From assembly GCA_025201805.1 (NCBI GenBank), contig MU619282.1:154540-218539 (forward strand): 64,000 nt of DNA, written 5' to 3'. This stretch comes from Parasitella parasitica NRRL 2501 (Eukaryota > Fungi > Mucoromycota). The notes beneath the pieces are model-generated. The model was not told the origin of the DNA. It was given only the letters and a program-made list of their open reading frames with translations, and ran no database searches. Of the stretch, positions 11,844 through 64,000 are shown in pieces; position 1 is the first letter of the stretch, and every line of letters starts with the position of its first letter. Position numbers and translations under genes: made by a program.

Positions 11844-12421
11844 TAAAACTTAATACCGCCAAATGGAAATACCTTGGACATAAATAAGATATTGAAATCA
11901 GCCTCTGTTCCATGCAACGTCAATGTTTAATTATTTATCTCTAACGATATTATTGCAACAAAGCTTGAAAATTTCGACAAAATAACGAGGAAAGAAGGAA
12001 GCACCGTCATCAACAACAGTGGTGTTTTAGTTGCGGTGAGTGTAGGTTACTTTTCAAGCTGACTTGTCGTGGACCTTCAATTGTTTAGTCCAACCTGTAC
12101 AGTCAAACCTATGGAAATTGGCGTTTTCACAAAAATAATTGTCACTTTCATAAAAATGATTAACCGAAAGGCAAAAATAATTGGCGGAAATTGAAAAATA
12201 AATGTCACATGCTCAATTCTTTTTGTAATTTTGGCCAAGAATATTTGTCCATGCCAAGTAATTAAATTAGGCGGTTAAGTTACAATATTGTCCCTTTTCT
12301 TCGTTACTGAATTTTGTTATTTTTTTTTCTACTAAAAACATTTTCTAACAATGAGCACATTTTTTTATGAAGATGGACAAGACAACATTTATAATGAGCA
12401 AGGAGAAATCGTTACGATCCG

Positions 12422-13729
12422 ATGGAGGATGTTCTTACACAAATTGATGATCCGAATGTAATTCTTGAAACAATTACTAGCCAGAAAACCTATTTAAGTG
12501 TTAAACGCCTGGAGAAAACTGTTGAAGAGTCTCCTTCTAAAAAGCAACTGAAGACTAAAGTACCAGATTTGGATAGACCATACAAAAACTATAGCGACTT
12601 TACCAGAGAGACGTTTATAGATCGTATGATTGAAAAGCCTGAAGAACGTGGGTTGGTGACTAAGGTTGCAAATGACCTAAATATCAATTATCGCACTGCG
12701 TTAAGATGGTGGAATAGCTATAAAGAAACAGAGGAGATTCCATATAAGAAATCCGAAGAAAACAGTGGCCCTAAAAGCTCGTTCACTGCTAAACATAACG
12801 AGTATCTACAGGGTCTATTGGATAATGATCCTCAACTATTTTCGGATGATATTATGAAAAGCTTGACTGAACAATTTGAAGGCTTCACCATCTCAAAGTC
12901 GCAACTAAATAATCATTTACGTAATACAATGCTTATCACTATCAAGAAACCATTGTTTGAGCCTGAAATAAGAAATTCACCAGAAAACATGGAGACAAGA
13001 TTTGAGTGGTTTATGAAATGGAAGGACTCTAATCTTGATTTTACAAAGAATTGTGTTTTCATTGATGAAGCCGGATTTCACATTAACATGAGAAATAATT
13101 GGGCAAGATCAAAAAAGGGTAGCCCTGCTATAGTAAAACGACCAAAAACTAGAGCGATAACACATACTATTATTGGTGCTATCCATTCATCTAGTGTTGT
13201 TCATGTTGTGATGAAAAAACCTCCACCAAGAAAAGAAAAGCAATCTATTAGTAAAAAGAGAAAAGCTAATAGTGGAACAAAAAGAATTGTAGCTGAAGTT
13301 GATTTAGAGGATCCAGAGTTTGAAGATCCTACTGATAATAAACCAGTAGCAAAAGGCACGACTACTGCGCATTTCGTTAAATTCATGAATGCGCTTCTTG
13401 ATATAATGGACCTTGATGAAAATTTGAAGGGAAATTATATTGTAATGGATAACGCCTCATTTCATAAATCCAAGCCAATGATACGAAAAATCGAACGTAG
13501 AGGTTATAAAGTGATGTACTTACCTCCGTACTCACCTGAATTGAATCCTATTGAACAGTTCTGGGGAGTAGTCAAAGGCAAAATGAAGCGTGATCGATTA
13601 TTGGCTGAAGAAAATTTATCTGATCGAATTGCTGATGCCTGCAATGATGTCCTTATCAGCGACCTCTATGGTTTCTGTAATCACTCAAAACGTCAGATTA
13701 TTAAATGTTATAAAAAAACACCATTCTAA
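12422..13729 (+). CDS. Tc1/IS630-family DD34E transposase (left arm of element A)
   Basis: HTH region, FIDEAGF, MDNASFH-34aa-PIEQFW. Confidence 0.95.
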   Translation: MEDVLTQIDDPNVILETITSQKTYLSVKRLEKTVEESPSKKQLKTKVPDLDRPYKNYSDFTRETFIDRMIEKPEERGLVTKVANDLNINYRTALRWWNSYKETEEIPYKKSEENSGPKSSFTAKHNEYLQGLLDNDPQLFSDDIMKSLTEQFEGFTISKSQLNNHLRNTMLITIKKPLFEPEIRNSPENMETRFEWFMKWKDSNLDFTKNCVFIDEAGFHINMRNNWARSKKGSPAIVKRPKTRAITHTIIGAIHSSSVVHVVMKKPPPRKEKQSISKKRKANSGTKRIVAEVDLEDPEFEDPTDNKPVAKGTTTAHFVKFMNALLDIMDLDENLKGNYIVMDNASFHKSKPMIRKIERRGYKVMYLPPYSPELNPIEQFWGVVKGKMKRDRLLAEENLSDRIADACNDVLISDLYGFCNHSKRQIIKCYKKTPF

Positions 13730-14870
13730 TATATACATATACATTAAATAAACAATTATTTTTAAAACGGCAAACATATATGATTAACTCTAGCCCCAAA
13801 TTTAACTACTTGATATGGACACTTTTTAGAGATTCATTTGGTCTACAGTATTTTGTGTTTAAAAAATATAATGCTTGGTGGAACTAAATCTGTTTCGTAG
13901 ATCACTCCAATACAAACGTTTCAGAAGAGAGTATAATTGTTAGGCCATTAGTGAATGGGAACCTAACCCAAAGATAACAAGTCATCATTGCACTGTGGGG
14001 ACGGCAGTTTTTTTTTTTGGCGAGATGATCTTTGAATTAAACTGGGGCGAAATAGAGAATTAGGCTGGTATAACGTGTCCTTGGGGATAGAAAGAAGTGT
14101 TGCCTTTTAAGTAATTTTGAATAAAGCTTCCAAAGTAGAGGTATTTTAAATTTAATAAAAATTAAGTTTCTTAAAACAGCCCCAATGGAGTTGCTGTGTG
14201 GTTTCCTATTTCCAAATGAAAGAAGGGTTTTAATACTTCCTGCTTATTAAAAGTAATAGTAAAGGATTACTAGAATACTCAAAGCAACGTAAATGTGTTT
14301 TAGAATTCCTAATAGCGGTGCTTTCTTGTGCTAGCCATTTCTTTAAAGCAACTTAATAGCAATGGAAAATATAAAGAAAGGAGATAACGTATTATTTTAC
14401 TTTTTATACAAAAAAAAGAAATATTATCTGTTTTGATTGATCGTGGCCGCAAAAAAAATTAAGGTAATAGAATGCTGGAAGTATCAGCCGAAATACCATT
14501 CGTTAGTGAAGATTACCCAGAATGTGGCGCCAGTTTCAGATTTTCATTTAATAATGCCATAGCGAAGATCATGTTCGTCATAAAAGATTAATCACAATAG
14601 TCAGCTTGAAGTGTAACAAATGTAATAATGCCCTTAAAAATCATACTTTTTTTGCTAGAAAAGGACTTGACCTTGGCCTCAAAAGAAAGGAGGTTTGCAA
14701 AAAGCACAATAATAGATAAAACAGCCAAAGCGAGATATTGTGATTAGTAATTATGTAAACTGCCTTTCTCATATTTTTATGCTTACCAAACGTATGATCT
14801 AAAAAAGCCTAAAGGCAATGATCAATACCGTGATGAATACAAGGAGATAAAAAACCACCAGGTTTTACTG

Positions 14871-20469: not shown

Positions 20470-21234
20470 TTACCCTTCTTCTTTCTTCCATCACTTTTTA
20501 CCCTATGTACACAAACACATACGTTTGTACAAGCAGCCAGAATATTATGTACTCCTTAAAAAACGCTTCTTTTTTTTTGCAAATTTAATTTGTAAAATAA
20601 AAAAGTTTACCGTATCACCAATGTTTTTGTTGACTGTCAGCGATCTTTTTCTATTCTATTTATGCCCTATTGAGTTTTGACACTTAAAAATTGTGGTCTG
20701 ATCGGTGTGGGATAAATGAAATTGTCTAATAAAGTTAAAATTAAGTAAAGAAAAAAAAGTCGTCTTAGCCCATATATCTCAATGACTTTATCTCAATGAC
20801 TTTGAAATAGTCTCACGTTAGTTCAATCTCGTCTTAGTGTTGCATTAGTTTTTCTCAACCCTTCTGGGGAAACGTATGACAATTTTTTAAATTGTCTTTG
20901 TAAATTCTCTATTTCGCCCCAGTTTAATTCAAAGATCATCTCGCCAAAAAAAAAAACTGCCGTCCCCACAGTGCAATGATGACTTGTTATCTTTGGGTTA
21001 GGTTCCCATTCACTAATGGCCTAACAATTATACTCTCTTCTGAAACGTTTGTATTGGAGTGATCTACGAAACAGATTTAGTTCCACCAAGCATTATATTT
21101 TTTAAACACAAAATACTGTAGACCAAATGAATCTCTAAAAAGTGTCCATATCAAGTAGTTAAATTTGGGGCTAGAGTTAATCATATATGTTTGCCGTTTT
21201 AAAAATAATTGTTTATTTAATGTATATGTATATA

Positions 21235-22542
21235 TTAGAATGGTGTTTTTTTATAACATTTAATAATCTGACGTTTTGAGTGATTACAGAAACCATAGAG
21301 GTCGCTGATAAGGACATCATTGCAGGCATCAGCAATTCGATCAGATAAATTTTCTTCAGCCAATAATCGATCACGCTTCATTTTGCCTTTGACTACTCCC
21401 CAGAACTGTTCAATAGGATTCAATTCAGGTGAGTACGGAGGTAAGTACATCACTTTATAACCTCTACGTTCGATTTTTCGTATCATTGGCTTGGATTTAT
21501 GAAATGAGGCGTTATCCATTACAATATAATTTCCCTTCAAATTTTCATCAAGGTCCATTATATCAAGAAGCGCATTCATGAATTTAACGAAATGCGCAGT
21601 AGTCGTGCCTTTTGCTACTGGTTTATTATCAGTAGGATCTTCAAACTCTGGATCCTCTAAATCAACTTCAGCTACAATTCTTTTTGTTCCACTATTAGCT
21701 TTTCTCTTTTTACTAATAGATTGCTTTTCTTTTCTTGGTGGAGGTTTTTTCATCACAACATGAACAACACTAGATGAATGGATAGCACCAATAATAGTAT
21801 GTGTTATCGCTCTAGTTTTTGGTCGTTTTACTATAGCAGGGCTACCCTTTTTTGATCTTGCCCAATTATTTCTCATGTTAATGTGAAATCCGGCTTCATC
21901 AATGAAAACACAATTCTTTGTAAAATCAAGATTAGAGTCCTTCCATTTCATAAACCACTCAAATCTTGTCTCCATGTTTTCTGGTGAATTTCTTATTTCA
22001 GGCTCAAACAATGGTTTCTTGATAGTGATAAGCATTGTATTACGTAAATGATTATTTAGTTGCGACTTTGAGATGGTGAAGCCTTCAAATTGTTCAGTCA
22101 AGCTTTTCATAATATCATCCGAAAATAGTTGAGGATCATTATCCAATAGACCCTGTAGATACTCGTTATGTTTAGCAGTGAACGAGCTTTTAGGGCCACT
22201 GTTTTCTTCGGATTTCTTATATGGAATCTCCTCTGTTTCTTTATAGCTATTCCACCATCTTAACGCAGTGCGATAATTGATATTTAGGTCATTTGCAACC
22301 TTAGTCACCAACCCACGTTCTTCAGGCTTTTCAATCATACGATCTATAAACGTCTCTCTGGTAAAGTCGCTATAGTTTTTGTATGGTCTATCCAAATCTG
22401 GTACTTTAGTCTTCAGTTGCTTTTTAGAAGGAGACTCTTCAACAGTTTTCTCCAGGCGTTTAACACTTAAATAGGTTTTCTGGCTAGTAATTGTTTCAAG
22501 AATTACATTCGGATCATCAATTTGTGTAAGAACATCCTCCAT
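21235..22542 (-). CDS. Tc1/IS630-family DD34E transposase (right arm of element A)
   Basis: Protein identical to 12422-13729. Confidence 0.95.
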   Translation of the reverse strand: MEDVLTQIDDPNVILETITSQKTYLSVKRLEKTVEESPSKKQLKTKVPDLDRPYKNYSDFTRETFIDRMIEKPEERGLVTKVANDLNINYRTALRWWNSYKETEEIPYKKSEENSGPKSSFTAKHNEYLQGLLDNDPQLFSDDIMKSLTEQFEGFTISKSQLNNHLRNTMLITIKKPLFEPEIRNSPENMETRFEWFMKWKDSNLDFTKNCVFIDEAGFHINMRNNWARSKKGSPAIVKRPKTRAITHTIIGAIHSSSVVHVVMKKPPPRKEKQSISKKRKANSGTKRIVAEVDLEDPEFEDPTDNKPVAKGTTTAHFVKFMNALLDIMDLDENLKGNYIVMDNASFHKSKPMIRKIERRGYKVMYLPPYSPELNPIEQFWGVVKGKMKRDRLLAEENLSDRIADACNDVLISDLYGFCNHSKRQIIKCYKKTPF

Positions 22543-22866
22543 CGGATCGTAACGATTTCTCCTTGCTCATTATAAATGTTGTCTTGTCCATCTTCATAAA
22601 AAAATGTGCTCATTGTTAGAAAATGTTTTTAGTAGAAAAAAAAATAACAAAATTCAGTAACGAAGAAAAGGGACAATATTGTAACTTAACCGCCTAATTT
22701 AATTACTTGGCATGGACAAATATTCTTGGCCAAAATTACAAAAAGAATTGAGCATGTGACATTTATTTTTCAATTTCCGCCAATTATTTTTGCCTTTCGG
22801 TTAATCATTTTTATGAAAGTGACAATTATTTTTGTGAAAACGCCAATTTCCATAGGTTTGACTGTA

Positions 22867-23755
22867 CCTGGCAATAAAAAGAGAAAGGTTTGTTTAGTTT
22901 ATAACTTTGACCTATCCTAACTATTAAATATCATTACATGTTATTTTAAAGATCTCAAATATCAACCAGGATGGATGTTGGACGATTAATAGCGATGAAG
23001 AATTCTGGGATAGCTGGAGAGAATATCTTGAAGGTTGTGATTGCCACGAGTTTTGGTAAGCCTATAGAACATTGGAGGATAAGCCTTATCCATAATTCAT
23101 TTGTTTTCTAATTTAGCCTGGAGAAAGATCACGTAATTGAATGTGGTTACACCATCAAGTGCAAGCCAAGCTATGACCAAGACCTTTATCACCAACTTGG
23201 TGATTATACAACACAATTAGTAAAGTCACCATTCATGACTCATAGCAGCTACCCCTCTCAAGTAATCAAAGCTTTCATGAGGTAGATATTAGGCGTCAAC
23301 TATTTCTATTCCCATTCTAAAGCTATTTTTATCAAGGGAAAGGAAAGAGCCATTTTAAAAGCTTTATCGTGTGATGCACATTGGGAGTTGATTGAGGGAT
23401 CTAATCCAACTGCAAAATATGCTTATGACTATTTTCAGTTTATGTAATTATTGAATCTATTTTGATAAGATGAAATATTGTGCATTTTTTCTATAGGTAT
23501 ACGTATCAAATCAGTAACAATTCCCGTAATCGAGTTTTGCCCTGGTGAATTATTACTGGCTTCGGCAGATGAAGATTACAAAGCTGATGGCCTTATAAAG
23601 TTCGATGGCATGGAGATGTGTCTTTTAGAGACATCAGGAAAGTATGACCTCGTTGACTCGCCGAGGTTTGGTTTCGACAACATTAAAGGTTCGTTTGGTT
23701 GTCTTATGTTTCTACGTAATTTGTTGAAGATTTGGTATTTCGCCAAATTAAGTAC
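22867..23755 (+). pseudogene. Spliced PD-(D/E)xK-like gene remnant, interrupted by element A and truncated by a Helitron
   Basis: Exons reading FWDSWREYL..CHEF / LEKDHVIECG and DYKADGLIKFDGMEMCLLETSG..FGFDNIKGSFG. Confidence 0.6.
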
Positions 23756-51970: not shown

Positions 51971-53355
51971 TTGACGAGTTGTATTACAGACAGATGGGAG
52001 AAACGGGAACAACACAACAAAGAAAAAGGGAAAAGGTAAAAGGCTTTTCGAGTCAAATTTATACTAATTTTAAGGAACGAGATTATTTTTTGTGCGCAAA
52101 AAGCACAGCCAGCAGGCAGACAGGTAGACAGGCAGACAGGCAGACAAGGCTTGTGCGCCAAGCTTTCTTGCACACGATGTAGAGAATTAATGACGCAGCC
52201 TTCAGCCTGTCTCTTTGTCAGTTTATCCCAATAAATTATGTTGTCCAGACCGAACAAAATGTCACCTAATCAGAAGTAAAATGTTAGCCAACCAGGAATT
52301 AGATTTTACTCTCACAGATTACTTTTTCTTGAGCTTACGAGATGAATATTTATAGTGAAAGCGGTCAATTAACGTAGGATATTTTATGTCAACTATCGAC
52401 GATTCCAATATTGTTCTAGAAAATTTGGTTACTCATTCTTCTTGTATGAAAATAAAGCCGACTGGAAACAAAAAAGTTCTTCCCGACAAAGAATTGTTAC
52501 ACACCAGGGCGGGCTCGCTGGGTGCGCTGCAGGTCCCCTCAAGCGAATTCCACCCCCATCAACTTTTTAGAGCAACACTGATTCTTCCTCGTCTATGAAA
52601 GACAAGACTCTCTAGCGCCGGCGGAAGGGACGACCCTGGCTTTTGTGGTTTGATAAGGTGAGTCGTCCTTGGCCAAGCTATTTTCAATAGTTGCGGTAGG
52701 GTGAATCTCAGAAAAGCGCTTGTTGCTAATAGTATTAAAAGTGAATACCCTAGTATTCTTCAGGTTTACGACTTTCGTAGACTGCCCCCCAAATGGTTCA
52801 TTTGGTGAATGTCCTTCATTGAAGAAACATCAAAAAAATAACCGTTGTGGAAATCGAAAAAGACGACTGTGGAAGAGGATGGCAAAACTGTCCCTATTAC
52901 GGTGTCCAGAATCTTGAGATTCTGTTTGTGTTTATCTGGATTTACCTATAGTATTACACTGTAGATGCGGTACATTTAGTTGTTTAATCGTAGTAAATTA
53001 ATCGATATTTTGCAGCATCTGTAAGCATTTGAACCGTAGCACAAGCATCAGAGATAGGTTTGCTATTTGCACTCGCCGCCAAGTGCTGCTTCGGGCTCAA
53101 AATCTTGAATTCATGAACTTTACTGATTGATTTTTATTTACATATTGACAGGCTTATCGCACTAAAAAAAAAAAGGTCATCACTCTTCTGCAAACAAATC
53201 AATTTTTGTTGCTACGTATCGTTTTTTGGCTAACTGAATGTGCTTGACGTTGAAGGATTTTAAGGCACTAGCAAGTGAAAAATTATAAATTTCAATCAGC
53301 TCCTTTTTGGTTTCTTTGGGTGGAGACAAAGAAAAAGAAGATTTTCGATGCTGGT

Positions 53356-54460
53356 TTAAGAAGACAAGATATTTCTTAATGAGCTTCTAACAGGGCTAAG
53401 ATAAAAGTCATCTTGAGCTAGCATTTTCAGTAGCAGCTCGTTCATCTCTTTTTGATGTATTTCTTGGTATGCAAAGGACTTGATTACAAGCGATGCAGCT
53501 GAATGCATGATATGTCGACTTTCAAATAATAATAGGTTCGCTGGCGAGAAGCCATTGTCCTCATACCTCTTGCTGTAGAATCCCCCGTTGTTTTTTGCAT
53601 TTAGCTTATAGTATTGGTTCATTATCCTGTTCTTGCGAATGTATTCTTTTTGTTTGATGGCAATGAAAATCTCATTGATCGAGATGGTTCGATAGCTTGT
53701 TGTGATAGTAGGTGGAAGCAATGAAACTGATGACCCAAGGAAAGGGGAAAAAAAACGTACCATCCACTGAGCCAAAGAATCCACTTGTTGCGAGTAATTC
53801 AACATAACCAAACCTGTAACTCAATTCAAAGTAGTCTTTTCCAAGTTTTGTCTTTCTTCTGATAAAAGCCACGGCTTTTTCTTGGCGTCCTACCTTTGAC
53901 ATGTCGGCACAATCATCTATCTGGTTGTTGTTATGAATGAAACAGGAAAAGCTGGTCGTAAAAAACCAATATAACAACTGATTCGACAAACTTTGGTCCG
54001 TACTCATTAACGATTCTCGAGGCTTCCACTGCATCCAGGTCTGTCTTCTTCATTAACAAATCGTCGCTAAAATCGTTTTTCCAGACGCGATATTCTTTGG
54101 AGTTGAAGAATCGATTGATAGAGGAAGCGATCATATGGCTAAGGTTACCCTTCATGACTATAGTTTCTTTGTTGGCAAGGTAATAATCGCGTTTTAGGAT
54201 GTCTTTTGCGCGTTCAACTTATGTTCTAACTGCTTCTGGAGTGACATTTTCATTGATATCAGTGAGCTGCTCGTCTCCACTGATCTTTAAAGTGACATGA
54301 TCCATTTCATCTTCTTCCACTATGAACTTGAATTTCCGTTCAAATCTTTCAGGTACAATGGAGGTAATCTTCTTGTGCTGTGGCACTTGAAAGTATGTTG
54401 TTGACCCTTTGCCCGACATACCTGAGTTAATTGCTGATTTTCTGTTAGACCGGTATTCAC
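53356..54460 (-). pseudogene. Fragmented gene of unknown family
   Basis: Consecutive frameshifted ORFs 54219-54488, 53931-54155, 53672-54034, 53356-53811 on one strand. Confidence 0.5.
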
Positions 54461-54461
54461 C

Positions 54462-54837
54462 ATGACCATCAACAAGGCCCAAGGTCACTCGACTTTCTTG
54501 GTCTTTTTCTCACATGGCCAGTTATATGTTGCTTTCTCGCGCATTAAGCAGCTATCTTCAATCAAAATTCTTCTGCAGAGAAAAACCTCAACTGCCAAAA
54601 ACTATACTGGATCATACACCGATAATACTGTATTCCATAAAGTATTTAGATAACTCTACTGATTTTTACATTTTTTTTTCTATTATGCCTTACTACATCC
54701 ATATTTTTATTTCTGCCTAACAATATGTTTTAAGTTACAATAAAAGAGCATTGAATATCTGATTAGCATTTATCAAAAGATTGAGCTCCTGGCAGGGCGA
54801 CGATGGCCGTCGTGAGCGAAGCGAGCAGGTCAGCTAG
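54462..54837 (+). mobile_element. Helitron 3' remnant
   Basis: MTINKAQG..FSHGQLYVAFSR; terminal gcagggcgacg...gagcgaagcgag...CTAG. Confidence 0.85.
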
Positions 54838-56498
54838 CCTTATATGTGTTTTTGCGAATTACTAAATTTGTGGTATATAGGGGCATCCTTAGGAATTAGC
54901 TTTCTTTACTGCTAGTGTCTGGTGCAACATTGCGAACTACAACCACCATATAAATGCCACCCTCTCCATTGTTATCGTACCCTTCTCTCATTTTTACCAA
55001 TAATCTCAATTGGTATGAATAATAACATTTAAAGTTGGTTGATATGTTAAACTAGAAATCACGGTCTACAATTGCCCTCAAAAGAAACTCCTCAAATTAA
55101 ATCTTATAATAAAAGGACCTAGGGTTTGATCAAGTCTTTTGAAATCACAAGCGTCATAGCAAATGATAGTATGCCAAAGCGTCTCTTCCTCAAGACAGGA
55201 GTTCAAAAACAACAATTCCGTATTTACGGTCTGATGCTAAGGCTTATATATTGGGCAAAGATGAAAGCGACGGGATACATGTACGAACGCTCCTCTGCAC
55301 AGCTCAAATGGCTTACCACAGTCGTTTTTGCCAACCACGTAAGGTGGGTGTCGACAACAGCATCTTTTTTGGTGTTGTTACTTTTTTGGGATCAGATGAA
55401 CTTCTACCTTCTCGTGGTTGATCCTGTTAATCATTATAACTTAACAGTTATTTTGAGAACTAAAAGAAGTTTCAGTCTATTTGCATTTATATTAATAATC
55501 AATGAATAAATAAAAATGTTTTGTAAATTACATCTTGACTTTTTAGTTTCTTGTAAATGCTTTTTTTTCAATGCTTGCAATAATAACGGGGTTTTATAGA
55601 GATTCTTTAGGGCTCTCTGAATTGAAGCAGCTGCAGTATTTATGATAGAACTTGCGAATATTGTGCTGGTCTCTTCATCAATCTTGAGTTTTGAAGTAGA
55701 GTTTGCGATGGTAATCCTAAAGCTCAGGTTCTAGATGCAGTTGCTTCACATTAAGAAATTTGAAGTGTTAATTCTAACCTCATACTCTGTACAGTATCAA
55801 ATAAAGAAGTTGTGTTCTTTGTCCTCTGGTTTTTTATAGTAAACTGAAAGCTAATAGCATAACATTAAGAATCAACGGAATCTTTCTCAAGATATTTTAT
55901 TTTGTAATCGTCCATGATCAAATAGTTAAATTGAAAGGTTTTGTCCTTGATGTTCATCGTGCCCTTTGATGATCTGTCATCTACTGTTACTTTTAATGTT
56001 GCTGCTGATGTTTTTCATGCTGTTGTTCTTTCCGTTGTTCTTTCTGTTGTTGTTGCTTTTGCTGTGCCCTTTCCACCTCGCTTTCACATTTATGCTTATG
56101 ATAATGCTGGTTACAGCCCATCCGGCAAAACAAAGCAAAGAAAATAATAAGTGCATTATCCTTACAACAATTCATAATTTCTTTTTTGTTACCTTTCATA
56201 CAATAGCCGCTCGATTTAAGGCTGTTCGATATAAGGCTATTCACGATATAAGGCTAAAATTTTTGTGAATTTTTTTTTTAAGCAGGGAGTTAGCCTTATT
56301 AGCCTTATTCGATAACAGTGCTCACGGTACCAATTTGCGGTTTTATATTTTTTTTTGCGGGTTTACAAACTTCCAATTTGCGGGTTTTTCATTGGCCAAT
56401 TTGCGGTTTTTTTATTCTCACTTTACGGGTTTGCTAGATCCCAATTAGCGTTTTTATTTTTTCAATTTACGTTTTACTTTACAAAATAAACAGCTATT

Positions 56499-57833
56499 AT
56501 GTTTTCAATTTCAGGCAAGATCATCTTCGAAGATGGCCAAGGAAATCTCTATAATGAGGATGGAAAAGAGGCAATGGACTGGGAAGAAGATGTAGATCCC
56601 TACAATTTAGAAAACCTAACTAACTTGACTCAGTATAAAGAACATCAACCAGTTGAATTAGATTCAAATGATCCCGCTTTGGATAAACGAATGGAAGACA
56701 TTCAAACCAAAGTTTCAACGGGAAATACTGCAGTTAAATACAAAACATATTCCGTTGACCAAAAAACTTTGTTTTTGTATTATATTAAGATCAAACTTTT
56801 TAAAGCTGCAAAAGCTGCAAAATTGTCTGGAGTAAACGAACGCACTGGACAGCAATGGGCGAAAAGACTTAGGGAAGATCCTGAATGGGATATATATGAA
56901 AAAAACACGAACAAAGTTAACCGAAAATCCAGTCAGCTTCAAGAGGAGCATAAGCTGTATTTGATAAACTACTTTGATGAGTTTTCTCAGGCACGCACAA
57001 AAGACGCAGTAGATAGTTTGACTGAAAACTTCGAAAACTTTAGTTTAAAAGAAACAGTCGTTGGAGAGTTTATCTCAAGGGAGTGCAATCTTTCTATCAA
57101 GAGCGTAACCCGTCACCCTAAAGCTCGAAATAGCCCAGAGAAGCTTAAAGCTCGTCGTGAGTGGGTAGAGTTATGGTCTGAAACCTCAATGGATTTTAAT
57201 ACCAATTGCATTTTCATCGATGAAAGTGCTTTTGATATAAACATGAGGCCACCTACTGCAAGATCGGTTAGAGGAACACCGGCTGTTGTTGTCACGCCTT
57301 CTACTAAGGCTATTAGCCATACTATTCTTGGTGCTGTTTCTGCATTGGGAATAATAAACATTGAGATACGAGTTCCAGTACCACCAAAAAAAGTAAAAGT
57401 AGTAGGTAGCCGTAAAAGAAAATCAACTGCTGTAAAGAAGCCTTCTTTTGGAGGAACTAATTCCGGTCACTACCTTAATTTTATTAAGAAAACTCTCGAT
57501 CAAATGGATAAATATCCTGAGATGAAAGGATTTTATCTCATTATGGATAACTCTCCTATTCATGATAAGAAAGACGGTGATATTGACAATATTATTGAAT
57601 CTAGAGGCTATAAATGTGTTTATCTTCCTCCTTATTCCCCAGAACTTAACCCCATTGAGCAGTTCTGGGCAGTAGTTAAGAGTAAAGTTAGAAGAAGCCA
57701 GTTTGGGAACACTGAGGATCTTAAGACCAGGATCAGTGAAGCATGTAATGAAATTCCTTTCAAACATCTTCAAGGTTTTGTTAAACACTCATTCGATACT
57801 TTTGAAAGATGTTTGAACGAGGAACATATATAA
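56499..57833 (+). CDS. Tc1/IS630-family DD36E transposase (left arm of element B)
   Basis: FIDESAF, MDNSPIH-36aa-PIEQFW. Confidence 0.95.
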   Translation: MFSISGKIIFEDGQGNLYNEDGKEAMDWEEDVDPYNLENLTNLTQYKEHQPVELDSNDPALDKRMEDIQTKVSTGNTAVKYKTYSVDQKTLFLYYIKIKLFKAAKAAKLSGVNERTGQQWAKRLREDPEWDIYEKNTNKVNRKSSQLQEEHKLYLINYFDEFSQARTKDAVDSLTENFENFSLKETVVGEFISRECNLSIKSVTRHPKARNSPEKLKARREWVELWSETSMDFNTNCIFIDESAFDINMRPPTARSVRGTPAVVVTPSTKAISHTILGAVSALGIINIEIRVPVPPKKVKVVGSRKRKSTAVKKPSFGGTNSGHYLNFIKKTLDQMDKYPEMKGFYLIMDNSPIHDKKDGDIDNIIESRGYKCVYLPPYSPELNPIEQFWAVVKSKVRRSQFGNTEDLKTRISEACNEIPFKHLQGFVKHSFDTFERCLNEEHI

Positions 57834-58740
57834 AAAAAAATATTTTAATAAAACGTAATTTGAAAAAATAAAAACGCTAATTGGGATCTAGCAAACCCGT
57901 AAAGTGAGAATAAAAAAACCGCAAATTGGCCAATGAAAAACCCGCAAATTGGTACCGTGAGCACTGTACATCTTTTTGGCAACTTATTTGTCACTTTTCT
58001 TGATGAAATAGAATATACAGTGAATCCATTTTCACATTGCGAACTAGCTGAAAATTTTCATACATGTGACGAAGTTAAATCCAATCAAATGCAGAAATAA
58101 GCTTTTTACTAAAATACAGTCCGGCTGGTGGACATTGTCGGTTACAAGAAAGATAACTGGATTTAATTTGTTAATTAATATAAAAACAATTGTCGGTCAA
58201 ATACGAATAAAATATAATAAGAGGAAAAGATGCTGCTAGGCTTAATTCATAGTGATTAGCCATGATTTAACTAACAGAATCATACAGTGTTTCGGTTTTC
58301 GTTAAAATTAATAGATATTTATTCAATTACAAGCTTTGTCAAGACACTTCTTCAACTGAATTTAGAAAAATAAATAAAAAATTTAAGCCATAACTTATAA
58401 TTATCATTGCAAAAAGCTATATAATAAACCCAAGTACAAACTGTTTGGGCGTAAAATGTCACAAAGATCTATGGTCGCTTACGAATGAACGTTTTTGATA
58501 ATTTTATATGCTATTTTTATAGATGCTATACAACTGTGGTCACGGAGAAAATTCATAGCGTGTCTTTCCAATACTTTAATGTTTTACCATAAATATACAT
58601 ATACTATTATTAATATTAGAGAACATATTAAATGAAATAATTTATTTTTGTGATATAAATTTAACAGCAAACAAATAGTGTTTCTCTTAACAATAAGAAT
58701 AATATTCGTTGTGAGAGGACTTAAAATGATAAACGAAGCA

Positions 58741-59595
58741 TTAAAAATCCTCTAATCGTCTTAACTTTTTCTGTAATACCTCAACCTCCTGTAATTTTCT
58801 TTCGATTTGTTTTTTAATTTTTGATTTAGCCTTTTCAATATCCTCGTTATAGTCGTCACTTGTACTAATAATAGTAGAAGCTGTCGTATTTGGATTGGTA
58901 TTTGTTGATGTTGTACTAGATTCATGATTATTTGCATCAATTGTAGAAATGACAGGCGTATCGACGTTACGGTTGCTTGGATTGGTATTTGTTGATGCTG
59001 TACTAGATTCATGATTATTTGCATCAGTTTTAGAAATGACAGGCGTATCGACGTTACGGTTACTTGGATTGGCATTAGATGTTGAATTGTTGCTGAAACT
59101 TGCGGTGGAATCATTGCTAATGTTAGTGCCAAGAGCGATAGAGCAATGGCACATCAATTTTGAGGATGAGCTAATTCGTGGTTGTACTTGAAAATTACTC
59201 TAAATAAGAATGTTAAGTATACTCTAATTTCACTTAATAGTAAATAGTGAAGCCTTACATAATTAATAGGCTTGTTATCTAATAGACTTGGGTTTACTCC
59301 TATTCCTTCAAGTCTTTTGCATATAAGCTTTTTCTGAATACAATAAACATAGTAAAAAGTCGAAGCATCAAGTTCAGATTCGAAATGAATGAGCGCAAAG
59401 CTACTATCAAAAGTTAAATCTTAGTCAAATACTGTGATATTTTGCTTACTTTTTTTGCTCCGTTTTGATAACATGTAGGGGCTTAACAATAGAACATTCT
59501 TTCAGAATTTGTTTTAATCGTTCACTTTTGATGCCTGTTATGCTATCACCACAAAGCTGAACGTGGCATTTTCTGTTACCACACGTCTCGCACAT
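58741..59595 (-). CDS. Cargo gene of element B: ~248-aa protein with Cys-rich N-terminus, RRM-like domain, S/T/N-rich repeats and C-terminal coiled coil; 3 exons
   Basis: Exons 59595-59450, 59400-59259, 59199-58741 splice in frame (GT-AG): MCETCGNRKCHVQLCG..SERLKQILKEC..KNFALIHFESELDAS. Confidence 0.75.
58893..59072. repeat. Two coding 87-bp tandem repeats
   Basis: NPSNRNVDTPVIS(KT/TI)DANNHESST(A/T)STNT occurs twice. Confidence 0.9.
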
Positions 59596-59887
59596 GAAAG
59601 AAATCTGTGGGAAAGCAAAAAAAAATTAATTTTTTTTTTTTTAAATGAGTTTTATTTGTCGCACGTAAAGATGGACTTACAGACCATCAGAAGCGGTGCT
59701 CAACAATGTGAAAATATGGATAAGGATAATTATACTGAAAAGAAAAAGATAAAATAAATCTAAGATAATAGCGCGAGGAGAAAAAAAATTAATGTAGTTT
59801 TGTTCTTGCTATTTCACAAGACTGTAACTCAAAATAAGTGATGACGTAATTAAATTAATTTTATTTATAGTGACCTAGCGTTTTTTT

Positions 59888-60032
59888 TTACTTTCGTGGT
59901 AGGCATTTTTTTATTTCTTTTGAGTCATCTTTCGTGGGTGGCATTAGGTTTACTTTCGTGGTAGACATTTTTTTATTTCTTTTGGGTCATCTTTCGTGGG
60001 TAGCATTAGGTTTACTTTCGTGGTAGACATTT
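59888..60032. repeat. ~61-bp tandem repeat containing five CTTTCGTGG motifs, upstream of the RRM-like gene
   Basis: tttactttcgtggtag.cattttttt..gtcatctttcgtggg..gcattagg, ~2.3 copies. Confidence 0.85.
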
Positions 60033-61122
60033 TGGATATGAATTGCTAATCACCTCCTCGTGGTCATATCTGGACAACTACTATTTCTATGGAAGTAGTA
60101 GGCTAAGTATTAGCATTTTGATTAGTTTAGCGCTTTTTTTTTTTAAATAAAGTTTATTGGTTATTGTTAGAGTTAGAAAGACAAATGATTGCTTACAAAC
60201 ATATGATTTTGGTAATTTTATATATACTGTTTTTATAGACGCTATACAACTGTGGTCATGGAGAAAATCCACAGCATGTCTTTCCAATGCTTTAATGTTT
60301 TACCACACATAAAATGGGAAGGTTCAAAAGTCCAGAATTTCTTTTTTACAGTAGTGTCTATACTTAATATATTAGGCACAGCGTCTCATTGCTAAATTAT
60401 TTCAGGGGTCAAGAATGAGTGCAGAGAAATGAATAGTAAAATTTATTTTATAATCCTTACGCTAGTCTTTTAATTACTTCTTCAGATCCATTTTTTACAT
60501 TTTACGCCCAAACAGTTTGTACTTGGGTTTATTATATAGCTTTTTGCAATGATAATTATAAGTTATGGCTTAAATTTTTTATTTATTTTTCTAAATTCAG
60601 TTGAAGAAGTGTCTTGACAAAGCTTGTAATTGAATAAATATCTATTAATTTTAACGAAAACCGAAACACTGTATGATTCTGTTAGTTAAATCATGGCTAA
60701 TCACTATGAATTAAGCCTAGCAGCATCTTTTCCTCTTATTATATTTTATTCGTATTTGACCGACAATTGTTTTTATATTAATTAACAAATTAAATCCAGT
60801 TATCTTTCTTGTAACCGACAATGTCCACCAGCCGGACTGTATTTTAGTAAAAAGCTTATTTCTGCATTTGATTGGATTTAACTTCGTCACATGTATGAAA
60901 ATTTTCAGCTAGTTCGCAATGTGAAAATGGATTCACTGTATATTCTATTTCATCAAGAAAAGTGACAAATAAGTTGCCAAAAAGATGTACAGTGCTCACG
61001 GTACCAATTTGCGGGTTTTTCATTGGCCAATTTGCGGTTTTTTTATTCTCACTTTACGGGTTTGCTAGATCCCAATTAGCGTTTTTATTTTTTCAAATTA
61101 CGTTTTATTAAAATATTTTTTT

Positions 61123-62457
61123 TTATATATGTTCCTCGTTCAAACATCTTTCAAAAGTATCGAATGAGTGTTTAACAAAACCTTGAAGATGTTTGAAAGG
61201 AATTTCATTACATGCTTCACTGATCCTGGTCTTAAGATCCTCAGTGTTCCCAAACTGGCTTCTTCTAACTTTACTCTTAACTACTGCCCAGAACTGCTCA
61301 ATGGGGTTAAGTTCTGGGGAATAAGGAGGAAGATAAACACATTTATAGCCTCTAGATTCAATAATATTGTCAATATCACCGTCTTTCTTATCATGAATAG
61401 GAGAGTTATCCATAATGAGATAAAATCCTTTCATCTCAGGATATTTATCCATTTGATCGAGAGTTTTCTTAATAAAATTAAGGTAGTGACCGGAATTAGT
61501 TCCTCCAAAAGAAGGCTTCTTTACAGCAGTTGATTTTCTTTTACGGCTACCTACTACTTTTACTTTTTTTGGTGGTACTGGAACTCGTATCTCAATGTTT
61601 ATTATTCCCAATGCAGAAACAGCACCAAGAATAGTATGGCTAATAGCCTTAGTAGAAGGCGTGACAACAACAGCCGGTGTTCCTCTAACCGATCTTGCAG
61701 TAGGTGGCCTCATGTTTATATCAAAAGCACTTTCATCGATGAAAATGCAATTGGTATTAAAATCCATTGAGGTTTCAGACCATAACTCTACCCACTCACG
61801 ACGAGCTTTAAGCTTCTCTGGGCTATTTCGAGCTTTAGGGTGACGGGTTACGCTCTTGATAGAAAGATTGCACTCCCTTGAGATAAACTCTCCAACGACT
61901 GTTTCTTTTAAACTAAAGTTTTCGAAGTTTTCAGTCAAACTATCTACTGCGTCTTTTGTGCGTGCCTGAGAAAACTCATCAAAGTAGTTTATCAAATACA
62001 GCTTATGCTCCTCTTGAAGCTGACTGGATTTTCGGTTAACTTTGTTCGTGTTTTTTTCATATATATCCCATTCAGGATCTTCCCTAAGTCTTTTCGCCCA
62101 TTGCTGTCCAGTGCGTTCGTTTACTCCAGACAATTTTGCAGCTTTTGCAGCTTTAAAAAGTTTGATCTTAATATAATACAAAAACAAAGTTTTTTGGTCA
62201 ACGGAATATGTTTTGTATTTAACTGCAGTATTTCCCGTTGAAACTTTGGTTTGAATGTCTTCCATTCGTTTATCCAAAGCGGGATCATTTGAATCTAATT
62301 CAACTGGTTGATGTTCTTTATACTGAGTCAAGTTAGTTAGGTTTTCTAAATTGTAGGGATCTACATCTTCTTCCCAGTCCATTGCCTCTTTTCCATCCTC
62401 ATTATAGAGATTTCCTTGGCCATCTTCGAAGATGATCTTGCCTGAAATTGAAAACAT
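61123..62457 (-). CDS. Tc1/IS630-family DD36E transposase (right arm of element B)
   Basis: Protein identical to 56499-57833. Confidence 0.95.
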   Translation of the reverse strand: MFSISGKIIFEDGQGNLYNEDGKEAMDWEEDVDPYNLENLTNLTQYKEHQPVELDSNDPALDKRMEDIQTKVSTGNTAVKYKTYSVDQKTLFLYYIKIKLFKAAKAAKLSGVNERTGQQWAKRLREDPEWDIYEKNTNKVNRKSSQLQEEHKLYLINYFDEFSQARTKDAVDSLTENFENFSLKETVVGEFISRECNLSIKSVTRHPKARNSPEKLKARREWVELWSETSMDFNTNCIFIDESAFDINMRPPTARSVRGTPAVVVTPSTKAISHTILGAVSALGIINIEIRVPVPPKKVKVVGSRKRKSTAVKKPSFGGTNSGHYLNFIKKTLDQMDKYPEMKGFYLIMDNSPIHDKKDGDIDNIIESRGYKCVYLPPYSPELNPIEQFWAVVKSKVRRSQFGNTEDLKTRISEACNEIPFKHLQGFVKHSFDTFERCLNEEHI

Positions 62458-63433
62458 AATAGCTGTTTATTTTGTAAAGTAAAACGTAAATTGAAAAAAT
62501 AAAAACGCTAATTGGGATCTAGCAAACCCGTAAAGTGAGAATAAAAAAACCGCAAATTGGCCAATGAAAAACCCGCAAATTGGAAGTTTGTAAACCCGCA
62601 AAAAAAAATATAAAACCGCAAATTGGTACCGTGAGCACTGTAAGGCTCTTATTTTACAGTAAATTGACGGTATTTAAATTTGTGTTGTGTTGGAAACTGA
62701 GCATTATGCTACAGATTTCGTACTTTTGCTCGATAGTGAGACGCTCTCTTGATTGTTGATTAATGCTTATAGTATAATTGTTTGTCAAAATATGCTTTTT
62801 TAAGAATAAAGAACTAAATGAATTTGACTGGACATGTGTCAAATTAATCTAATAGCTGTAGTACCGTATCAACTATGCATGTGACTGTTTTAAGAGTAAT
62901 AGTCACATGCACGATATAAGGCTATGTAATAATTGTGGCTTACGAACGATATAAGAATAACTCAGATAACAGACCAGATAATTGTTATGATGCAATCATA
63001 TAATATACTGTATCCGTATAACCACTCAAAAAAATTAAATAAACATATCCAATCAGAAAAATAGAATACCCATTGGCTGATATGGTTTTTGAGTTACTGA
63101 AAATGGATAGACTTCCCCTTTGGGAAAAAAAGATCAAATTTACCTTTTATTTCAATATTTTTCTCAAATTAAAGGTGCCCTGGAGAGACTTGAGGGCCTT
63201 TATGAGAGTCTCTCAACTGTTTTTGATATTTTGTAGATATACCAAGGTAGAGTGTTAATTGTATATCTTACTGATATTGAGGAATAAATAAATCGAAACA
63301 AGTAGCTTTCGATATATAATTTATTGTCTGACAAATTATATGAATTGCATGTTAAGAGCAAAAAAAAAAAGAGGCATATGTAAGTATTAATTATTTTTTG
63401 AAATAGTTTATATTGTAAATGTTATAAATATTA

Positions 63434-64000
63434 TCAAGGCTCAGGCTGGTAAGGAATAAAAGATATATCCTTTGCTTTACCTTTTCCCTTCGTTCTTCGG
63501 TTTTTGGCCATCAAAGGAGGCGTCGGTCTAATATGAAGAGGTGTAAGAGGGCGAGAGGGTGGAGCAGGGACAAAAGGCACAGAGGCAGAGGGCACAAAGG
63601 CGGAAGGCACAGAGGCGAAAGGCACAAAGGCAGGAGGCATAGAAGCAGAAGGTAAGGCGGTTGGAAGAAGAGAGGCAGGAGGAACAGAGGCAGATGCTGC
63701 AGAGGGAGAAGACACAAAGGCAGAAGATCCATAATTACTACCTTGGCCAGCCAAGGCAAGTTGTAGCTGCGACGTTAGGAATTGTTGGCTTGTTAACATT
63801 GTCTGGATCATGGCCTGTTGCTGTTTTATCTGTTGATCTTGCTGTTGCAGCTGGAAGGACAGTGCATTCAATAAAGAATTGTGGTGAGATTTGGCCTCAA
63901 CTTCTTGTTTATGATTGCTGTTGATGGTATGCATCATAAAAGCAAATTGCTTGTCAAAGTGTTGGTTGGTGCGCAAGATCTGATTGTTTATTTGCAGAGT
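63434..64000 (-). CDS. 3' part of a hypothetical Q/P/S-rich protein, probably extending beyond the window
   Basis: Open frame with QQQ coiled coil and ASVPPAF-like repeats. Confidence 0.55.
   Translation of the reverse strand, partial: TLQINNQILRTNQHFDKQFAFMMHTINSNHKQEVEAKSHHNSLLNALSFQLQQQDQQIKQQQAMIQTMLTSQQFLTSQLQLALAGQGSNYGSSAFVSSPSAASASVPPASLLPTALPSASMPPAFVPFASVPSAFVPSASVPFVPAPPSRPLTPLHIRPTPPLMAKNRRTKGKGKAKDISFIPYQPEP

Follow-up and report, generated by a model that had tools for sequence, protein, structure and literature searches.

The stretch of DNA analysed here, referred to as the window, comprises 64,000 nt of the genome of the fungus Parasitella parasitica (contig C46, positions 154540-218539; window position 64000 is the end of the contig). 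Towards its right end lies a mirror-symmetrical block of about 6.3 kb, in which two copies of a Tc1-like transposon, hereafter T, bracket a gene, and which is probably a natural sandwich DNA transposon. A repeat search of the window delimits the block as a perfect inverted repeat (56315-58465 and 60491-62641, 2151 nt each, 100% complementary, 2025 nt apart), far beyond what chance would produce; the only other inverted repeat of comparable size within the window is a separate structure, element A (see below). Each arm consists of a complete T element of 1652 bp and 498 bp of other DNA. The T copies occupy 56316-57967 on the plus strand and, as its mirror, 60989-62640 on the minus strand, and their open reading frames (ORFs) converge. 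The 498-bp arm extension lies at 57968-58465, mirrored at 60491-60988, and can be divided into piece A (57968-58179), which ends at a TTAATTAA site, and piece B (58180-58465). Between the arms, a spacer present once (58466-60490), read at half the depth of the arms and unique in the genome except for a miniature inverted-repeat transposable element (MITE), holds the cargo gene.

Both T copies carry an intact transposase ORF of 444 aa (56499-57833, plus strand; 61123-62457, minus strand). The transposase matches the Pfam domain DDE_3 (PF13358) with 76 bits (cut-off 28.6, 3.6e-21) and contains the catalytic triad D241/D350/E387, in which 36 residues separate the second D from the E (DD36E); the above-threshold match and the triad together give T the DDE catalytic domain expected of the Tc1/mariner superfamily. 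The insert between the first and second D is long, at 108 residues. T has 30-nt terminal inverted repeats (TIRs) and 104-nt subterminal inverted repeats (56373-56476 and 57849-57952 in the left copy), and its ends read CAGTGCTCACGG..., as opposed to the CAGTCAAACC... of element A. The TIRs and the TA target-site duplication likewise agree with this superfamily: three of the four T ends in the block read TA-CAGTG (hyphens mark junctions), the left outer end being A-CAGTG. The outer end of the left copy, which starts with CAGTGCTCACGG, carries repeated CCAATTTGCGG motifs, and the outer ends of the block exceed the inner T ends by 43 bp, that is by two further CCAATTTGCGG motifs, which are predicted copies of a binding motif. 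The extra motifs might possibly confer a functional advantage on the outer pair; the number of CCAATTTGCGG motifs also differs between the two ends of a related element in Helicostylum.

These two are the only copies of T in the 32.8-Mb genome, where the next best match is 67% identical. A database protein search returned full-length (444 aa) homologues of the transposase at 81-88% identity, all from Mucorales; the exact protein is not on record in the databases, its closest entries being these single copies. At the DNA level, the relatives of T are single, TA-flanked elements in Helicostylum pulchrum (86.6% identity) and Mucor saturninus, with TA-CAGTG at every end seen (both ends in Helicostylum, the left end only in M. 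saturninus).

The cargo gene (58741-59595, minus strand) encodes 248 aa in three exons (59595-59450, 59400-59259 and 59199-58741) separated by two introns (59401-59449 and 59200-59258). It is spliced and transcribed: a contig of the sequencing run X15 joins 59611-59450, 59400-59259 and 59199-59032 on the minus strand across GT..AG introns. We take X15 to be RNA-derived because 59800-60490 is left uncovered. The same run provides low-depth contigs on the transposase ORF (56494-56923 and 57463-57818). In the joined exons of the cargo gene the reading frame stays open across both joints, and the product is the annotated P. parasitica protein P0001. The original prediction had described two identical, convergent DD36E Tc1 copies in inverted arms, with a TIR unlike that of element A, around a spacer holding one intact three-exon gene. 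All of this is borne out by the complementarity of the arms, the ORF strands, the triad, the end sequences (CAGTGCTCACGG against CAGTCAAACC), the spliced RNA contig and P0001, while the sizes it had given (arms of 2144, spacer of 2037 and Tc1 of 1651 bp) were off by a few bases and become 2151, 2025 and 1652.

The cargo homology searches were made with the separate exons and then with P0001, and the protein search found homologues in Mucorales only. What the protein does is hinted at only faintly: the match to RRM_1 stays below threshold (14-18 bits, cut-off 20.7), the AlphaFold2 model is poor (predicted local distance difference test, pLDDT, 47) apart from a C-terminal coiled coil (212-247), and the structural look-alikes in the Atlas are of RRM type with template modelling (TM) scores of 0.5-0.62, to be read as leads only. 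The middle of the protein is rich in serine, threonine and asparagine and includes a 29-aa tandem repeat, seen in the sequence as two 87-bp units inside exon 3 (58890-59063, minus strand) and again in the protein alignment, in which the Backusella and Mucor proteins are without one unit. One decayed paralogue of the gene is found elsewhere in the genome (C124:66844-66984). The MITE of the spacer (about 170 bp, 59612-59780, more than 20 copies in the genome) sits just upstream of the start codon, flanked by a duplication of about 10 bp (an A-run plus TTAAT), and the cargo transcript contig runs into it.

How the block came to lie where it does can be read from its flanks. The sequences on either side (56198-56314 on the left, 62648-62927 on the right) are the two parts of a ~425-bp repeat of which the genome has at least 18 copies (95-99% identity), and in at least 15 of the paralogous copies these parts are contiguous. 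Uninterrupted copies read ...CGATATAAGGCT..., or in a longer version ...TTCGATATAAGGCT..., and the window at this point reads CGATAA[CAGTG ... CACTG]TAAGGCT, with the right part of the interrupted repeat (62642-62927) joined to the block as CACTG-TA-AGGCT, a canonical TA junction. The contiguity of the flanks in the paralogues means that the whole block is a single insert in one TA, with the two T termini as its limits. The ~425-bp host repeat itself looks MITE-like. In the left flank the RNA-derived run X15 holds a contig that skips 86 nt at high depth (56106-56193; CT..AC, which is GT..AG on the minus strand), pointing to an unannotated spliced transcript that adjoins the host repeat.

A single insert is hard to reconcile with a composite transposon of the classical kind, in which two T elements would have inserted independently on either side of a resident gene. 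Two complete inverted copies with a TA at each inner end are indeed what such a history would leave. Against it, the cargo is not resident DNA of the locus, since the flanks are contiguous in the paralogues; moreover, the mirror identity runs 498 bp past both inner T ends and there is no third T copy in the genome that could have served as source. Two separate insertions cannot explain such a pair, and we rejected this history as very improbable. The original prediction had held that a chance double insertion was unlikely, and the position of the block as one insert, at one TA of a multicopy host repeat, agrees with this. Its name for the structure, a composite transposon, can be kept insofar as two complete copies bracket a cargo and share one target site; it has to be given up insofar as the copies did not arrive separately and the arms run on for 498 bp beyond them.

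Perfect arms close to a contig end call for scrutiny of the assembly, and we placed Logan contigs of four public runs on window positions 56000-61999: X1 (organism A), X7 (organism C), X14 (organism D) and the RNA-derived X15. The X1 contigs match the window without differences over almost the whole stretch, at a depth of 243 in the Tc1 core and 277 in the arm extension against 103-117 in the spacer, a ratio of 2:1, and zero-mismatch contigs bridge both boundaries between arm and spacer (58430-58973 and 60004-60526). Contigs of X7 and X14 also span both boundaries, at about 99% identity and once more with arms at double depth. The doubled depth and the bridged joints rule out misassembly for the inner junctions, and the artefact that the original prediction had itself named as the finding that would undo it did not materialize; contigs this short are compatible with either orientation of the spacer between the flanks. 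A collapsed or chimeric repeat could still be imagined from the short distance to the contig end, from arms whose 100% identity is what a collapsed graph node would give, and from one stretch, 57981-58036 (mirror 60920-60975), at which the assembly disagrees with the run contigs. Yet the inner junctions are bridged at single-copy depth between double-depth arms in X1 and recur in independent runs of other organisms, and we regard an artefact as scarcely credible and misassembly as a rejected candidate. As to the discordant stretch, position 58036 is T in all three DNA runs and A in the window, and a double-depth X1 contig carries a 48-bp segment inverted and an AAGAA insert before it returns to window-like sequence up to 58459; the junction of this contig is absent from the assembly. 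Either the assembly may have collapsed a small palindrome here, or the segment may be invertible.

The two boundaries of the spacer differ in history. Backusella circina and Mucor circinelloides carry the cargo DNA at 92-97% identity, with introns and flanks as similar as exons; a housekeeping gene taken for comparison, that of chorismate synthase, reaches 83% between M. circinelloides and Parasitella. Vertical descent would not leave the cargo segment so similar across genera, and it thus moves horizontally. Neither copy is accompanied by any T; in M. circinelloides the cargo lies between housekeeping genes, the surroundings are unrelated in both species, and a neighbouring gene in Backusella has no DNA match whatsoever. 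In the Backusella locus (L074) one high-scoring segment pair (window 58189-58989, 92.7%) crosses the left boundary, 58465/58466, so that piece B is contiguous with the spacer there, and the right boundary, 60490/60491, is crossed by no cargo homologue in L074 or in the M. circinelloides locus (L073). The left boundary is therefore old continuity and the right one a new joint, bridged by contigs in X1, X7 and X14 and likely the novel junction of an inverted duplication. In M. circinelloides the cargo segment (L073, 5772-7356) is rearranged, with an 86-nt inverted repeat of 62-bp tandem units together with a partial, inverted copy of its 3' flank, a sign that mirror duplication may come easily to this segment outside Parasitella as well. 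The MITE is missing from organism C, where an X7 contig joins 59611 to 59781, and from Backusella and M. circinelloides.

The outer portion of the arm extension has another origin. Contig C51 carries a Tc1-like element whose long TIR includes a stretch matching piece A at about 92% identity; there the sequence runs uninterrupted through the TA that T occupies in the window, which indicates that T once inserted inside such a long terminal repeat. Outward from this stretch the C51 repeat extends for some 125 bp, up to a Tc1-type terminus, TA-CAGTCAGG, which resembles element A of the window, and in the other direction it stops about 36 bp past the TTAATTAA site. The C51 element itself (L042, 4125-7250; about 52120-55250) has ends reading CAGTCAGGCTTATT, with a TA on the right side, and repeats of about 330-370 nt that contain piece A; its core holds a large, partly N-masked ORF that is by eye a candidate piggyBac-type transposase. 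Two further readings of the inner part of the block were rejected. The inner 3 kb cannot be a long-TIR element with an abutting Tc1, as piece A continues on C51 to TA-CAGTCAGG and TACATC is hence no element end; and there is no support for piece B and its mirror copy, B', as the TIRs of a TTAA-inserting element, the copies in Backusella and Mucor being without B' and having ends unlike the piggyBac-like ends on C51.

These data lead us to propose that the 6.3-kb block is a natural sandwich DNA transposon, formed by one inverted duplication and then transposed from its two outer ends, a reading to which we give a probability of about 0.68. An autonomous T would have come to lie in the long TIR of another Tc1-like element, at a TA next to the Mucorales gene segment that circulates horizontally. 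A single inverted duplication would then have copied T and the adjacent 498 bp to the far side of the segment, creating the joint 60490/60491 and leaving the block with two identical, full-length T left ends that face outward. The T transposase could have used this outer pair as the ends of one transposon, excised the block and pasted it whole into a TA.

The duplication may not have been needed if an inverted repeat had existed around the cargo beforehand, T entering one arm and reaching the mirror TA of the other through gene conversion or because it inserted into a hairpin stem, after which the outer-end pair would have moved the block. That piece A belongs to the long TIR on C51, continuous across the TA of T, fits such a course, as do the differences from the window in organism C, most of which are common to both arms and suggest concerted evolution (one site, 58450 versus 60506, differs between the arms). 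It is opposed by piece B: the arms include these 286 bp, which in Backusella are contiguous with the cargo on one side only, no genome examined has a natural B' on the other side, and the C51 repeat ends about 36 bp past TTAATTAA, not 286 bp. Arm-to-arm copying is the main alternative, but we consider it unlikely and retain the one-step duplication.

The same block occurs at a second place. In organism C (X7), where both inner joints are the same, two contigs lead up to the outer end at 56315 with sequence that is foreign to the window and ends ...CTA-TA-CAGTG, and hardly any contig covers the window's unique left flank; the block thus sits at another site there, with a canonical TA. This is what the original prediction had proposed as its test, namely the same unit at other loci with different flanks, and at contig level it turned out as foreseen. 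In organism D (X14) there are extra, rearranged or internally deleted versions, for example one with the joint 58207>60809 and a 30-nt filler, a joint which, by its sequence, looks typical of those left by transposon gap repair.

A real inverted duplication might nevertheless have stopped being moved by T, or never have been moved, its locations resulting from horizontal transfer or recombination of a larger segment. One copy per genome, an imperfect left target-site duplication (TSD), a very low RNA depth of the transposase and a cargo segment that occurs alone, without T, in other genera would all be compatible with immobility. The limits of the block, in return, match the T termini to the exact nucleotide, at a TA within the host repeat, the outer end in organism C again adjoins a TA, and the extra rearranged copies in organism D include the 58207>60809 joint of the gap-repair type. 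We find immobility quite improbable and continue with the transposed sandwich.

Several points weigh against the transposed sandwich nonetheless. At the site of insertion, the left outer junction is without the T of the expected TA (A-CAGTG) and is not a textbook TSD, and the host-repeat copy of the window is without 21 bp directly to the right of the insert that other copies have. The block ends 1.36 kb from the contig end, and 57981-58036 (mirror 60920-60975) in the assembly disagrees with all three DNA runs. The evidence for a second locus, on which mobility rests, is at contig level, with the foreign flanks seen as a 30-nt consensus. There is one block copy per genome, with no proliferation seen within a genome, and in the contig-level data for 56000-61999 neither an excision footprint nor an empty orthologous site was seen. 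Finally, the duplication mechanism is not demonstrated: at 60490/60491 no microhomology that would convincingly point to fold-back priming was evident by eye, and the comparisons of genome and databases did not find the donor locus of the inverted duplication. Database searches found no named genome that holds the whole sandwich.

A demonstrated precedent for the proposed duplication comes from maize, where alternative transposition of Ac/Ds elements, re-replication and end joining yield Composite Insertions, in which duplicated flanking DNA is enclosed by transposon ends at a new target site (PMC4270019). In the block the left boundary is ancestral and the right one unique to the sandwich, which would fit outward ends around donor flanking DNA at a novel joint. 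On this model, T and its sister copy would each have contributed a left end, the two being used as a pair. We infer that the duplication arose either in this manner, with re-replication and end joining after alternative transposition had used the left ends on two sister chromatids, or by fold-back repair, and that the transposase then acted on the two outer ends. Maize Composite Insertions and macrotransposons (PMC4270019, PMC9910405) share with the block the outward ends, the duplicated flanks, the new internal joint, the new target and an end pair taken from two copies. They differ in being built from hAT elements with 8-bp TSDs and from two neighbouring elements, whereas the Parasitella block is a Tc1 product at a TA, has the same end mirrored, and has persisted and spread between fungi.

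The design also recalls the bacterial composite transposons (Tn5, Tn10 and the IS630-built Tn630, PMC11544213), in which inverted copies of elements, of the IS630/Tc1 superfamily in the last case, surround a cargo, the outer ends define the unit and one target site is used; the first IS630-built composite was reported only in 2024 (PMC11544213). In the Parasitella block, by contrast, the arms include 498 bp of non-element DNA, a sign of duplication, the unit resides in a eukaryotic genome and its cargo gene is spliced. Sandwich vectors have been engineered from Sleeping Beauty, with two complete inverted elements around a cargo and outer ends that mobilise a large insert. Those are man-made, while the block is natural and comes with its own two transposase genes. 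These vectors and the maize macrotransposons are its nearest analogues, and text searches of the literature brought up no eukaryotic Tc1/mariner sandwich of natural origin. T itself shares the 36-residue D-E spacing with the DD36E/Incomer group of Tc1/mariner (PMC6875036), to which it is likened by this spacing; Incomer was described from animals, while T has the 108-residue insert and relatives that are all from Mucorales.

Element A is the other mirrored structure of the window. It is a perfect inverted repeat (12097-14061 and 20903-22867, arms of 1965 nt, 6841 nt between them) with outer ends TA-CAGTCAAACC on both sides and convergent 435-aa ORFs (12422-13729, plus strand; 21235-22542, minus strand). 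No matching inner TIR is evident, and the arms look like one Tc1 end, a transposase and about 260 bp. The original prediction had taken the two structures to be independent, in agreement with their different transposase families and ends. Elsewhere in the genome, distant Tc1 relatives lie in inverted repeats at L068 (C66:63049-70999+, at least 1153 nt, 99.6%), L067 (C69:21062-25115, 535 nt, 98.9%) and L069 (C120:56186-59856, 349 nt, 99.7%). The mirror-pair layout thus recurs in the Parasitella genome. Beyond the block, near the contig end, a 180-aa minus-strand ORF (63434-63976) contains a 15-bp tandem array of about 10 units (63559-63738).

It is tempting to go further and to see in the block a currently active sandwich transposon, whose outer ends are the preferred substrate, which shuttles an expressed gene between genera of Mucorales, which arises in one step by same-end alternative transposition between sister chromatids, and which may spread through cell fusions between Parasitella, a mycoparasite, and its hosts. 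We hold this extended version to be rather doubtful as it stands; if true, an active sandwich would be the eukaryotic counterpart of bacterial composite transposons.

To our knowledge, the general view of cut-and-paste transposons in eukaryotes is that they mobilise nothing but themselves and derivatives shortened by deletion. The shuttling of genes by paired elements is textbook knowledge in bacteria, and in eukaryotes it is known mainly from maize genetics and engineered vectors. In the Parasitella block both transposase genes are intact and the cargo is expressed; the block also has a second locus in another organism, and its boundaries speak for one duplication. It offers a testable system in which to ask how units of this kind come about, whether they are favoured as substrates and in what way genes travel among early-diverging fungi, and a natural model for transposon vectors with large cargoes.

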